From the sequence record PV340851.1: a DNA stretch of 64,000 bases; one strand, 5' to 3'. The position numbers were made by a program, and so were the translations under genes. Numbering within the stretch: the first letter of the stretch is position 1; every line of letters begins with the position of its first letter. Below, in pieces: positions 28,308-59,502 of this stretch. The notes under the pieces are model-generated. The model was given only the letters and a program-made list of their open reading frames with translations, was not told where the DNA came from and did not search any database.

Positions 28308-28486
28308 CAAAAGAACTCCCAGAGTGGAAGCGCAGAGCACTGGCAGATCCGAATCTGCCAGACAGTCATTGGACGATCTTGAGGTTGGGTCCGACGAGTC
28401 TAGCAGAAGCGTTCATTCTGGGGGCGATGAAGATCAAGTACACACTTTCCCAGACCCATGGGACGGGGACTGGAACGACGCGGTAA
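28304..28486 (+). CDS. Small hypothetical protein
   Basis: ATGA overlap with nrdB; 60 aa. Confidence 0.55.
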   Translation: MTKELPEWKRRALADPNLPDSHWTILRLGPTSLAEAFILGAMKIKYTLSQTHGTGTGTTR

Positions 28487-37735: not shown

Positions 37736-37809
<74 letters not shown>

Positions 37810-37813
37810 CCTC

Positions 37814-37885
37814 GCTTGCTTAGCTCAGCGGTAGAGCATCTCGTTTACACCGAGGCGGTCGGCGGTTCGATCCCGTCAGCAAGCA
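37814..37885 (+). tRNA. trnV: tRNA-Val(UAC)
   Basis: Acceptor GCTTGCT/AGCAAGC, anticodon loop TTTACAC, T-loop GTTCGAT; no encoded CCA. Confidence 0.95.
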
Positions 37886-41304: not shown

Positions 41305-41484
41305 TGCTCTGGTCGGGATGGTCTCTTGACCCCCTAGGTTTCTTTGTTCCTAAAACAAAGTGGTGCGGATGGGATACCTCCCGCCAGGTTTCTTATTTCC
41401 TGTCAAAGAATAAGTGGTGGATCCAATTGACCCCTTCCGTGTGGTTGGTTCTTGTTTACAACTAAAACAAACAAGTGGCGAGCA
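41305..41484 (+). ncRNA. Structured RNA of the manA/wcaG motif class, three UGGYG repeat units
   Basis: Closing stem TGCTC/GAGCA; three units of xGG-TTT-stem-loop-stem-TGGYG with loops complementary to the upstream xGG. Confidence 0.65.
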
Positions 41485-53732: not shown

Positions 53733-53779
53733 CATGAAGCAATGTTAAGCACCTCTAAGGTTCGTAACATGTTTTACTA

Positions 53780-53885
53780 CTGCCGCTACCGAGACTAGGC
53801 AGACAAATCCGTCTCTCATACCCACGATGGAGGGTGTCGTGGGAATATTCTAATCGTCAGTTCCCTGCTGACCTTTCTTACCCTT
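53780..53885 (+). ncRNA. PhotoRC-II-like structured psbA leader
   Basis: CTGCC/GGCAG stem with GAGAC/GTCTC pseudoknot; CCCACGAT/GTCGTGGG hairpin with GAGGGT loop; upstream of psbA. Confidence 0.7.
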
Positions 53886-57722: not shown

Positions 57723-57982
57723 GCATATCAGGAAGACCTAGCAGCAAAATGAATACATTCTGTATTCAATACTGGCCGTTTGGTAGTGTAGAACAACCAA
57801 AGGTTATGCGTCGTATCAATAAAAATGGTATCGTAATTTCTACCAAGAAATTTTCTGAGGTCTTCATGTATACCTCATTGCAAGATGCATGGGATGATAC
57901 TCAGTGGTTAATGGAACATGGATTTGATGTAAAGGTACGCAAGTGTAACCTGGGTCGCAACGATCACTTCTGGTTAATCTAA
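57719..57982 (+). CDS. Hypothetical protein (87 aa)
   Basis: ATGA overlap; operon orientation. Confidence 0.65.
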   Translation: MSISGRPSSKMNTFCIQYWPFGSVEQPKVMRRINKNGIVISTKKFSEVFMYTSLQDAWDDTQWLMEHGFDVKVRKCNLGRNDHFWLI

Positions 57983-58308
57983 TGGGCGATCACTACTTGT
58001 TAAATCTGTTTGATTGTGATAGATCAAAAGTAAATGATGAAAAATTAATCAGAAAGCTGTTGCATGACGCAGCATACTGTGCTAGAATGACTGTGTTGGA
58101 AATCGTAAGTCACAAGTTCTACCCACAGGGTGTCACTGCTGTCGCATTGCTATCTGAAAGTCACATGAGTATTCATACGTGGCCAGAGCATGGTACTGCA
58201 GCAGTAGATGTTTATACTTGTGGTGATTCAGATCCTAGTCTGGCATGTAGTGTGATCCGCACACAACTGGATGCTAGCGACTGGGACATCCAACACATTA
58301 AGAGATAA
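57982..58308 (+). CDS. speD: S-adenosylmethionine decarboxylase proenzyme
   Basis: PQGVT, LSESHMSIHTWPE self-cleavage motif, DVYTCG. Confidence 0.92.
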   Translation: MGDHYLLNLFDCDRSKVNDEKLIRKLLHDAAYCARMTVLEIVSHKFYPQGVTAVALLSESHMSIHTWPEHGTAAVDVYTCGDSDPSLACSVIRTQLDASDWDIQHIKR

Positions 58309-58331
58309 TGAAATGTATCACATGATACATC

Positions 58332-58360
58332 TTGACATCTCTATATACTAATGGTATACT
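58332..58360 (+). promoter_or_regulatory. Sigma70-type promoter for the riboswitch cassette
   Basis: TTGACA-N17-TATACT with TG extension; predicted start near 58367. Confidence 0.85.
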
Positions 58361-58369
58361 ATACCAGTA

Positions 58370-58603
58370 CGTTCATCTTATGCTCAGCACTCTGCTGGCA
58401 TTGACCCTTGCCCATCATAATGATGCATCACCCTATGGGTGGCACATGAGTTGTGAAAGGTTCCTCCAGAAACGAATTGAAATCCTTATGGATGACAATT
58501 TGGATCGACGTTCTAAATATAATCTACTAGGTTATTTTAGATCGAAGGTTGAAGGTCAATGTGAACAGACCTTAGTATAAGACGCAAGTAAGTCGCGGAA
58601 CGG
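58370..58603 (+). ncRNA. Glutamine-II (Downstream-peptide)-like aptamer 1 with ORF-filled loop
   Basis: CGTTCA...GACGCAA...GGAACGG; P1 CGTTC/GAACG; P2 TCTTATG/TATAAGA. Confidence 0.65.
58380..58580 (+). CDS. Small two-Cys protein nested in aptamer 1 (66 aa)
   Basis: Hydrophobic N-terminus; SC-x12-DDNL-x4-K-x2-L-x4-R-x6-C. Confidence 0.7.
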   Translation: MLSTLLALTLAHHNDASPYGWHMSCERFLQKRIEILMDDNLDRRSKYNLLGYFRSKVEGQCEQTLV

Positions 58604-58605
58604 AG

Positions 58606-58791
58606 CGTTCATCCCATGGTAGAATTACTACTGTACACCACACTCAGTTGCCAACAAACCGATGCTTTGATGCTGAGGATTAAGGCACATGATAACCTTA
58701 GCGATATGCTTAAGGTTGAACTGATCGAGACCGTAAGGGAATCGGCACCAGAATGTGATTGGTACTGGGACGCAAACGACTGAAGGAACGG
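58606..58791 (+). ncRNA. Glutamine-II (Downstream-peptide)-like aptamer 2 with ORF-filled loop
   Basis: CGTTCATCCCA...TGGGACGCAAACGACTGAAGGAACGG; P1 CGTTC/GAACG; P2 TCCCA/TGGGA. Confidence 0.75.
58616..58783 (+). CDS. Small two-Cys protein nested in aptamer 2 (55 aa), not in ORF track
   Basis: MVELLLYTTLSCQQTDALMLRIKAHDNLSDMLKVELIETVRESAPECDWYWDAND; paralogous pattern to the 58380 ORF. Confidence 0.7.
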   Translation: MVELLLYTTLSCQQTDALMLRIKAHDNLSDMLKVELIETVRESAPECDWYWDAND

Positions 58792-58850
58792 ATAAACGGA
58801 TCCACCGTAAGGTGAGAAGGTTAATCATCCATTCTTTTAGGAGACCTACA

Positions 58851-59018
58851 ATGAACACACTCAACCTAATCAAAAAGCAGATCAAGAAAGCATCTGCACT
58901 TCACGACGCACAAGTTCTTCACACCGTTTATCGTGGTGTTAAGTATGATACTAAGTGTGTAGAAAGCAAAGATACTCATGGTGTCTTCTGCTATCGTGGC
59001 AATACTTACGATAAGTGA
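58851..59018 (+). CDS. DUF4278-like small protein
   Basis: SD AGGAG; YRGVKY and YRG motifs. Confidence 0.75.
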   Translation: MNTLNLIKKQIKKASALHDAQVLHTVYRGVKYDTKCVESKDTHGVFCYRGNTYDK

Positions 59019-59046
59019 GAGGCAACTCTTTCTAGCAAGTAAATAA

Positions 59047-59074
59047 GAGGGGCACTTGACATGCCCCTTTTTTT
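59047..59074 (+). terminator. Intrinsic terminator closing the riboswitch operon
   Basis: GGGGCA-CTTGACA-TGCCCC plus T7. Confidence 0.75.
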
Positions 59075-59079
59075 GTATT

Positions 59080-59502
59080 ATGATGTATGAGTATCACTAC
59101 CATGAATGCAACTGGTCTCCTGCATATGGTGACTGGAGAATACATTCATTGAGTGAAGATAACAATTTAATACTACCCATTCAAAAGATAGAACATCTTC
59201 TTACTGAAGATAAATTGCAACTAGTACAGCACAAAGACATAGCATGGAAGGGAAAGCATCTATATCCATTCCATAATCTAGAGAATTGTGTGTGTTGTGA
59301 GGGCAAACGTTATGCATCGTGTGACATAAAGTATCCTGGTATCATTACCGAAGGACACAATCCATACGATAATAAATATCGTATGATAGATGGTAAGCAT
59401 CGAATGCAAAAGATGAGATACCTAGGTATGACACAGAGTCAATACTATCTCATCCCTTTCAACGAACTTATTCCATTCATTATTGAGTCGCCTTATGGAT
59501 AA
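59080..59502 (+). CDS. ParB/Srx-N-like domain protein
   Basis: KYPGII...YRMIDGKHR. Confidence 0.55.
   Translation: MMYEYHYHECNWSPAYGDWRIHSLSEDNNLILPIQKIEHLLTEDKLQLVQHKDIAWKGKHLYPFHNLENCVCCEGKRYASCDIKYPGIITEGHNPYDNKYRMIDGKHRMQKMRYLGMTQSQYYLIPFNELIPFIIESPYG

Follow-up and report, generated by a model that had tools for sequence, protein, structure and literature searches.

The window analyzed here is the whole 64,000-nt stretch of sequence record PV340851.1, which originates from Synechococcus phage Sf-CH3, a T4-like cyanomyovirus (cyanophage); positions 58300–58860 were compared with this record and agree at 100% identity. It contains one short unit of three small open reading frames (ORFs), all located on the + strand: ORF1 (66 aa; positions 58380–58580), ORF2 (55 aa; 58616–58783) and ORF3 (55 aa; 58851–59018). 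The first two, which are the subject of this analysis, lie in a pair of tandem glutamine-riboswitch-like aptamers, one ORF filling each hairpin loop, and their products are likely to be related to each other. The same trio is annotated as gp196, gp197 and gp198 in syn9, whose families the three ORFs represent; the GenBank annotation of Sf-CH3 includes ORF2 and ORF3, while ORF1 is unannotated. An earlier note on this DNA, made from the sequence alone, had correctly delimited the two nested ORFs: ORF1 begins with its ATG at 58380, and the stop codon of ORF2 ends at 58783.

The unit is flanked by speD (57982–58308) and by an intrinsic terminator-like hairpin followed by a T run (59045–59071, + strand), which ends the three-gene unit. 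Upstream of ORF1 a strong sigma-70-type promoter was predicted (58332–58360, + strand; TTGACA and TATACT separated by 17 nt, with TG ahead of the -10 hexamer; 11 of 12 matches). The predicted transcript start (~58366–58369) is placed 1–4 nt 5′ of aptamer 1, and the same promoter layout precedes the first aptamer in related loci. Metatranscriptome contigs span positions 58320–59011 and barely cover the flanks, which provides weak backing for transcription of the unit.

Comparison with the PHROGs database revealed full-length matches for all three ORFs, to families without an assigned function: ORF1 matches phrog_6471 (E 3.7e-37; residues 1–65 on profile positions 1–65 of 66), ORF2 matches phrog_504 (E 6.8e-27; residues 1–55 on positions 1–53 of 53) and ORF3 matches phrog_545. 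In Pfam, no match of any kind was obtained for ORF1 or ORF2 at E values up to 10; this applies to the CP12 domain and to DUF4278 (PF14105), whose YRG repeats were found in neither protein.

Codon-level analysis was performed with 23–39 distinct relatives out of 52 viral contigs. The ratio of nonsynonymous to synonymous substitution rates (dN/dS), a check proposed in the earlier note, had a median of 0.15 for ORF1 and 0.22 for ORF2 (0.17 for ORF3), and purifying selection extends along the full length of both nested ORFs. Entropy at codon positions 1, 2 and 3 was 0.64, 0.44 and 1.04 for ORF1, and 0.70, 0.35 and 1.08 for ORF2, so that the third-position values exceed those of the second position 2–3 times. 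The length of the proteins is constant (66 aa for ORF1 and 53–56 aa for ORF2; about 100 clusters at 90% identity each), and several residues are invariant (H13, Y19, W21, H22, C25, E26, E34 and Y52 in ORF1; C12, E35, L36 and W51 in ORF2). Frequent frameshifts or stops in homologs, which the earlier note had regarded as contradicting its reading, were not encountered. Among loci picked by the RNA motif alone, an intact ORF fills the aptamer-1 loop in 61 of 64 cases and the aptamer-2 loop in 139 of 143, and at least one of the four apparent failures in the latter set (L063) just starts a few bases downstream. The frames are thus intact in approximately 96% of the loci, with indels occurring in multiples of three. 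ORF1 and ORF2 almost certainly encode real proteins.

The RNA context of the two ORFs was recognized by comparison with ORF-less loci. In these, the site of ORF1 is occupied by a compact hairpin, composed of CGUUCA and a 4–9-bp stem with a short loop, followed by CGCAAGUAAGUCGCGGAACG. In Sf-CH3, the whole of ORF1 replaces the short loop, and the stem is formed by bases around the start codon (UCUUAUGCU) and the stop codon (AGUAUAAGA). The 5′ half of aptamer 1 (58370–58379, + strand) comprises CGUUCA and the 5′ stem strand, the stem continuing into the ORF1 start codon. The 3′ half (58574–58605, +) comprises the 3′ stem strand including the ORF1 stop codon, the core CGCAAGUAAGUCGCGGAACG and the linker GAG. 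Aptamer 2 begins directly afterwards with CGUUCAUCCC (58606–58615, +), which abuts the ORF2 AUG, and is completed by UGGGA (3′ stem strand) and the core CGCAAACGACUGAAGGAACGG (58766–58791, +), which overlap the end of ORF2. Both start codons are located in the 5′ hairpin strands, the ORF1 stop codon in the 3′ stem strand and the ORF2 stop codon in the core; the last five codons of ORF2 (WDAND) and its stop are themselves aptamer core, and the third-position entropy of these five codons is near 0. The conserved order of CGUUCA, inner hairpin, CGCAAG and GGAACG, with a covarying inner stem, was found. The nesting claimed in the earlier note was thereby borne out, as the ORF flanks match the halves of compact glutamine-riboswitch-like aptamers and a covarying stem surrounds ORF1.

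This stem was tested in 52 distinct ORF1-bearing units. It contains a mean of 5.5 contiguous pairs, compared to 3.9 with partners shuffled among loci (maximum 4.63 in 2000 shuffles), and the pairing is lost when one partner is slid by 1–2 bases. The third stem position carries C:G in 29 units and U:A in a further 21. Inner-stem variants across the related aptamers include UCCC/GGGA, UCCUCC/GGAGGA, ACCC/GGGU and UCUUAU/AUAAGA; the choice of the ORF1 stop codon tracks the bases preceding the AUG. The minimum-free-energy (MFE) fold of the 500-nt leader includes the long-range aptamer-1 fold (z = -4.1 compared to shuffled sequences). At aptamer 2, the inter-aptamer linker is GAG in all 35 loci found via the ORF2 protein, compared to 4 of 91 loci with a compact aptamer 2 (GAU in 50). 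This linker yields GGAG 10 nt 5′ of the ORF2 AUG, a Shine-Dalgarno-like ribosome-site signature tied to the presence of ORF2.

A further helix was observed within the ORF1 mRNA, where positions 58396–58406 pair with 58554–58564, i.e. the codons for A7-L8-T9 with those for G59-Q60-C61. The helix is retained by 25–29 of 29 relatives of equal length, a few changes being compensatory (three from G:C to C:G), and it probably joins the two aptamer-1 halves. Equal-length sequences were used for this comparison because of indels, as RNAalifold run on a MAFFT alignment of whole aptamer-1 + ORF1 units kept the outer pairs only. Such a conserved long-range helix, together with a leader folding well below its shuffled controls, would also suit large structured RNA insertions with frames open merely by chance. 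The codon-position pattern and dN/dS of 0.15–0.22, the three-base indels, the frames intact nearly throughout, the Shine-Dalgarno-like motif linked to ORF2 and the lack of conserved internal RNA structure in ORF2 all argue against a non-coding origin, which is considered extremely improbable.

The earlier note had described ORF1 and ORF2 as paralogous two-cysteine mini-proteins sharing the pattern SC-x12-(D/H)DNL-x4-K-x2-L-x4-R-x5/6-C. This pattern is readable letter for letter in both translations (S24, C25, D38, D39, N40, L41, K46, L49, R54 and C61 in ORF1; S11, C12, H25, D26, N27, L28, K33, L36, R41 and C47 in ORF2). At the level of families, fewer positions are conserved in both, namely [S/T]-C, the Leu of "NL", K, L, [K/R] and the closing Cys. 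The identity at "DNL" is specific to Sf-CH3, the ORF2 family having N-x-x-[L/I] at that place. Comparison of the two proteins by BLASTP gave an E value of 0.051 with 26% identity.

Profile-profile comparison, the test suggested in the earlier note, was carried out with hhalign. Small family profiles gave P 0.019, a score reached by 4 of 150 column shuffles. With larger families, from which the RNA-dictated DAND tail had been trimmed, P was 0.0014 over 39 columns extending from Cys to Cys, and the family alignments A1 and A2 gave P 0.0048 with both Cys aligned. The widest ORF2 superfamily profile was built from 97 short ORF2-like representatives (50% non-redundant), obtained by an exhaustive HMMER search with the ORF2 family, in which 127 representatives (clustered at 50% identity) were recovered at E values of 0.001 or lower. 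Compared with the ORF1 family, this profile gave P 6.1e-5 and an HH probability of 65% over 39 columns, again with both Cys in register; compared with alignment A1 it gave P 2e-4 over 50 columns. The alignment with A1 also pairs the hydrophobic N-termini and places 13 His-Tyr-Trp-rich ORF1 residues as an insertion. In a shuffle control on match columns only, the observed score of 22.5 was reached by none of 200 shuffles (mean 9.2, sd 2.1, maximum 16.8).

The family models were also run against a decoy set of 7,921 distinct small ORFs, collected from the retrieved loci in all six frames. The three best non-self matches of the ORF1 hidden Markov model (HMM) were ORF2-family members (E from 0.031), and nearly all the best non-self matches of the wide ORF2 HMM were loop-borne ORFs, including more than 20 ORF1-family members. 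Matches of the ORF2 profile to the two long repeat proteins P0300 and P0302 (E ~6e-6, four stretches) were taken as spurious, since these are beta-rich secreted repeats. Each of these lines is modest; as all of them concur on one register, shared ancestry of ORF1 and ORF2 is likely, with an HH probability of at most 65%.

The structures predicted by AlphaFold2 are congruent with this kinship. The ORF1 model (mean predicted local distance difference test score, pLDDT, 83) contains helices 25–37 and 43–54, and the ORF2 model (mean pLDDT 85) contains helices 12–24 and 30–43. In each model, a 13-residue helix capped by the first Cys is followed by a 5-residue turn, a second helix (12–14 residues) and, 3–6 residues further on, the second Cys. 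In a search of BFVD, the ORF2 model found M4QRY1 (root-mean-square deviation, rmsd, 0.8 Å over 36 columns; Foldseek probability 0.90; E 0.83), identified by exact look-up as the S-CAM1 member of the ORF1 family. Among solved structures (Foldseek against PDB; VIA-align wide), only generic helical hairpins were retrieved (E at least 3, Z at most 3.7), which point to no function, and homologues present in the ESM Atlas matched only their own viral clusters. The structure prediction proposed in the earlier note therefore yielded the same Cys-helix-turn-helix-Cys order for both peptides. Of the disulfide-closed helical hairpins that it had suggested, the two-helix hairpins were obtained, while the clasp is just geometrically plausible: in the models the two Cys are placed at the open end of the hairpin. 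The verdict of the note that the two mini-proteins are paralogs is probably right as far as homology is concerned, given the profile-profile similarity and the congruent predicted fold.

Export of the peptides, as suggested in the earlier note, appears doubtful. Both proteins have a short hydrophobic N-terminus. In the ORF2 family it consists of about 8 hydrophobic residues, is acidic at position 3 (Glu/Asp), lacks basic residues and ends with S/T/N/H/Q next to the Cys; in ORF1 it is a 10-residue stretch without a charged or basic n-region. Judged by inspection, using a basic n-region, a hydrophobic core of ~10–15 residues and a small residue at -1/-3 as features of a Sec signal, neither a Sec nor a lipoprotein signal (lipobox L-[AS]-[GA]-C) was accepted. 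Exported disulfide-closed peptides, acting in the periplasm or on the membrane, e.g. on nitrogen uptake, would be consistent with the hydrophobic N-terminus seen in every family, with loop-borne families that start with Lys, a long Leu-rich stretch and an Ala-Gly site, and with a conserved Cys pair, which outside the cytoplasm would be a stable disulfide. The short, acidic start of the ORF2 family, the residues that precede its Cys and exclude a lipobox, and the conserved His, Tyr and Trp following the ORF1 stretch, which resemble part of a folded protein, nevertheless make export unlikely by the same inspection.

The distribution of ORF-bearing and compact aptamers was then compared using samples that are biased with respect to the counts of combinations. 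All four combinations of aptamer 1/aptamer 2 were found: compact/compact (many), compact/ORF2 (~88), ORF1/ORF2 (~61) and ORF1/compact (~15). Viral contigs abound in the compact aptamer 2, with at least 120 stretches, usually in tandem with aptamer 1; it is followed by a YRG-repeat ORF3 in 86 of 98 distinct cases among the matches listed. A metatranscriptome contig from run X19 joins position 58615 to 58767 via TTCG, which corresponds to a compact, ORF-free aptamer 2; compact and ORF-bearing forms thus co-occur in one sample.

Other small genes occupy the same loops. At least three further two-Cys types were identified in aptamer 2, one of which has an ORF1-like start (MLSL...) and another a signal-peptide-like start. 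Aptamer 1 harbors at least three more types, one reading through into the core and ending with GRK. In all, at least six further two-Cys families were noted in loops (L059, L072, L077, L086, L108, L109 and others). GRK + stop tails are encoded by the aptamer-1 core (GGACGCAAGUAA) and DAND + stop tails by the aptamer-2 core, and so the protein tail is dictated by which aptamer carries the gene. Common to all loop families are a hydrophobic start and two Cys separated by about 35 residues. When four families were compared in six pairwise profile comparisons, both Cys were aligned in every case (P 1.4e-5 to 0.012).

Relatives were also found outside aptamers. Distant ORF2 relatives lack the DAND tail, and the three that were traced are ordinary genes of other marine phage-like contigs, with a normal ribosome site and with no CGUUCA or GGAACG nearby. 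These free-standing relatives keep the Cys-helix-turn-helix-Cys plan. They were noted in the marine phage-like contigs L301–L306; in two contig types, the free-standing ORF2 relative is followed by a conserved gene of ~67 aa (motif DKWNRGLD), and one cluster representative (P0335) is a fusion of an ORF2 relative with the product of this gene. A scan of genome contigs with the ORF2 family retrieved three phage-like contigs in marine metagenome-assembled genomes and none in picocyanobacteria; no host homologue was found.

These data bear on the origin of the nested pair, which the earlier note had ascribed to duplication of an aptamer-plus-ORF cassette as a unit. Compact forms of each aptamer are common, all four combinations occur, other two-Cys families fill the loops and free-standing relatives exist, and a cassette duplication is not supported by this picture. 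The ORFs come and go independently of the aptamers, and their insertion or exchange into a pre-existing tandem riboswitch fits better; one early duplication may have occurred. The protein family has a life of its own, its members having repeatedly come into aptamer loops. ORF1 and ORF2 are probably two diverged members of one phage superfamily of 50–66-aa proteins.

Convergence would instead have unrelated small ORFs shaped alike by the size of the loop, the stem-fixed ends and a preference for compact hairpins. The sequence identity of 26% and the BLASTP E value of 0.051, the HH probabilities of 2.5–65%, the simple fold and the RNA constraint on codons at both ORF ends are all compatible with this explanation. 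However, the 39 aligned columns lie between the Cys, away from the constrained ends, and the tests were run on profiles from which the DAND tail had been removed; moreover, the observed score was matched by 0 of 200 shuffles, the aptamer-free relatives retain the same plan and both Cys are in register in six of six family pairs. On this evidence convergence is judged improbable, and common descent of the two proteins is retained.

The third gene of the unit, ORF3, contains YRG repeats and matches DUF4278 (PF14105) with E 2.2e-4 and 22 bits, which is sub-threshold (cut-off 25.3); the IF17-like reading of DUF4278 genes follows PMC6212724. Its putative expression platform (58780–58843, + strand) is formed by CUGAAGGAA (58780–58788), shared with the aptamer-2 core, which can pair with UUCUUUUAG (58832–58840). 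More generally, CU[A/G]AAGG of the aptamer-2 core pairs with CUU[U/C]AG, running into the ORF3 Shine-Dalgarno sequence AGGAG (58839–58843). This helix is present in the MFE fold and is accompanied by covariation (A:U 55, A:C 0, G:C 41, G:U 20; 56 further loci, unclassified by the pattern used, were seen by eye to have C as well). The arrangement is that expected for a glutamine ON-switch ahead of a DUF4278/IF17-like gene, as shown experimentally in cyanobacteria (PMC6212724); tandem glnA RNAs were noted in 2010 (PMC2864571).

Taken as a whole, the favored reading, in which related hairpin mini-proteins are nested in riboswitch loops and their translation may exclude aptamer folding, is considered fairly probable. 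With a transcript starting 1–4 nt 5′ of the first CGUUCA, the ORF1 AUG would lie ~13 nt from the 5′ end and would be readable before the 3′ half of aptamer 1 is made. A ribosome in a nested ORF would have to open the hairpin needed by the aptamer and would keep the aptamer open, and a closed, glutamine-bound aptamer would bury the nested AUG and free the Shine-Dalgarno site of ORF3. One early transcript would thus yield the mini-proteins under one condition and the IF17-like protein under the opposite one. For nested translation and aptamer folding being mutually exclusive, the chances are put at about even.

The peptides themselves might be functionless, the ORFs acting as translated spacers, similar to leader peptides, in which only the passage of the ribosome matters. 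Start and stop codons built into the aptamer stems, an ORF2 stop codon lying within the strand that pairs with the ORF3 ribosome-site region and the dispensability of the ORFs in many phages would all agree with such a role, and the finding would matter less if it were true. Purifying selection over the whole length with many invariant residues, confidently predicted folds and homologues outside aptamers render it very unlikely, and functional nested proteins remain preferred.

The weakest step concerns what these proteins would do. They may be cytoplasmic small binding or regulatory proteins acting on host carbon/nitrogen control, the hairpin being clasped by the Cys pair through a redox-sensitive disulfide or a shared metal site. 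A cytoplasmic, CP12-like, redox-switchable regulator tied to the nitrogen state of the host is a rather doubtful proposal by analogy; its link to nitrogen, also suggested in the earlier note, is drawn from context, i.e. the glutamine-sensing leader and the IF17-like gene downstream. Tentatively, and as a possibility only slightly better placed, the aptamer loop could be a dedicated socket for one superfamily and part of a two-way switch with opposite outputs, in which the IF17-like regulator of glutamine synthetase would have its low-glutamine counterpart, or an antagonist, in the two-Cys hairpins during infection.

Several observations weigh against parts of the favored reading. No glutamine riboswitch family was matched in a search of the window with Rfam, either at the gathering level or at E up to 10, which is explained by the 170–200-nt loops breaking the covariance model. 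Compact relatives of both aptamers themselves score 22–30 bits on RF01739 and RF01704 (E 6e-4 to 0.16), below the gathering cut-offs of 33 and 35 bits. Glutamine binding, folding of the aptamer across a 170–200-nt loop and nested translation are predictions from sequence. No conserved internal helix that would join the halves of its aptamer was found in ORF2. The second Cys codon of ORF1 is located in the conserved RNA helix, and part of the Cys conservation may therefore reflect an RNA constraint. As regards the proteins, the ORF1–ORF2 pair taken alone is marginal and not significant at 26% identity, and the modeled two-helix hairpin is a simple fold, with insignificant matches to solved structures and an E value of 0.83 for the BFVD match. 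A ribosome terminating at the ORF2 stop codon (58781–58783) would cover the strand masking the ORF3 site, and so positive coupling is also possible. The regulatory role of the mini-proteins, including their binding partners, is a guess by analogy.

An RNA-level cause of the Cys pair was considered separately and rejected as a general explanation, since ORF2 is without such a helix and free-standing relatives keep both Cys.

Known systems resemble the unit in part. As in the glutamine riboswitches RF01739 (glnA type) and RF01704 (Glutamine-II/Downstream-peptide type) (PMC6212724, PMC2864571), the core is composed of CGUUCA, an inner hairpin, CGCAAG... and GGAACG; the tandem arrangement (glnA RNAs), the DUF4278-like gene downstream and a platform competing with the ribosome site are also shared. 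In the published riboswitches, however, the loop of the inner hairpin is short and regulation concerns an ORF further downstream, whereas here the loop holds a gene of 55–66 codons. Attenuator leader peptides and upstream ORFs are likewise short ORFs in a leader whose translation decides the RNA fold, but they comprise ~14–30 codons, show little conservation beyond the regulatory codons and lie ahead of the RNA switch, in contrast to folded, conserved proteins predicted inside an aptamer. PHROGs families phrog_6471 and phrog_504, which ORF1 and ORF2 match over their full length, are kept there as two unrelated families without RNA context; here they are linked to each other and to loop-borne and free-standing relatives.

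Among proteins, the working analogy is CP12, a small regulator of the Calvin cycle with Cys pairs acting as redox switches, which is also encoded by cyanophages (PMC7760959). It is of similar size, and its Cys pairs close loops or hairpins and switch enzyme binding. CP12 has no sequence relation to ORF1 or ORF2, contains two Cys pairs, the members of each being close together, and is mostly disordered in its reduced state, whereas in the present proteins a single pair spans a predicted hairpin of 34–35 residues. The glutamine synthetase inactivating factors IF7 and IF17 are small cyanobacterial nitrogen regulators under glutamine riboswitches, and ORF3 is an IF17-like member of this group; ORF1 and ORF2 differ in lacking a DUF4278 match and YRG repeats, and in their predicted fold, a Cys-bounded helical hairpin. 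The engineered mini protein A domain Z34C (PDB 1zdc), a ~34-residue two-helix hairpin with a disulfide clasp at the open end, was one of the weak matches of ORF1 in Foldseek (E 6.3; rmsd 1.3 over 30 columns). Since Z34C was designed and its match is insignificant, it demonstrates no more than the structural feasibility of such a clasp.

The known RNA layer of cyanobacterial nitrogen control consists of glutamine riboswitches with their IF17-like targets, and it has been copied by cyanophages. The present results indicate that phage glutamine aptamers repeatedly carry, inside the sensing RNA, what are probably members of one small two-cysteine superfamily, with the start and stop codons of the nested genes forming part of the aptamer stem. 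ORF1 and ORF2 would accordingly be diverged relatives rather than unrelated fillers, and approximately two hundred clusters of "hypothetical proteins" (gp196-like and gp197-like) would gain a shared predicted fold and a regulatory setting. As aptamers occur naturally both with and without a nested gene, they offer a ready system for examining how translation and ligand sensing interfere. The proteins are also candidates for a second small-protein regulator used by phages on host carbon/nitrogen metabolism, and if the two-way switch were real, one RNA sensor would drive two opposite protein outputs. In the literature searched, neither syn9 gp197 nor any gene located inside a glutamine aptamer was the subject of a report; as far as these searches reach, the kinship of the two proteins and the wider superfamily are undescribed, and so is its repeated occurrence in the loops of glutamine aptamers.

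Several minor observations were made in the course of the analysis. In four loci (L044, L045, L042 and L172), a ~750-nt insertion with a homing-endonuclease-like gene is located exactly between GGAACGGAGCG and the next CGUUCAUCC, parting the two aptamers; in GenBank, records of relatives list an HNH or homing endonuclease at the same site.

Elsewhere in the phage record, positions 28407–28474 (+ strand), directly 3′ of nrdB, gave a weak match resembling Glutamine-II (21 bits; E 5.6e-4 for the record). It reads CGUUCA ... UGGGACGGGGACUGGAACG, with a frame encoding PWDGDWND that is reminiscent of the WDAND tail of ORF2; it may be a decayed copy or a chance match. In syn9, the gp196–198 trio is located directly after nrdB.

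Within positions 59045–59084, the loop of the terminator following ORF3 holds the TTGACA of the next sigma-70-like promoter (TTGACA, 17 nt, TATGAT; 11 of 12 matches), and the terminator and promoter of adjacent early units thus overlap. Gathering-level Rfam matches in other parts of the window comprise a wcaG RNA (41334–41428; 88.6 bits), a PhotoRC-II RNA (53767–53856; 60.8 bits) and two adjacent tRNAs (37736–37885).

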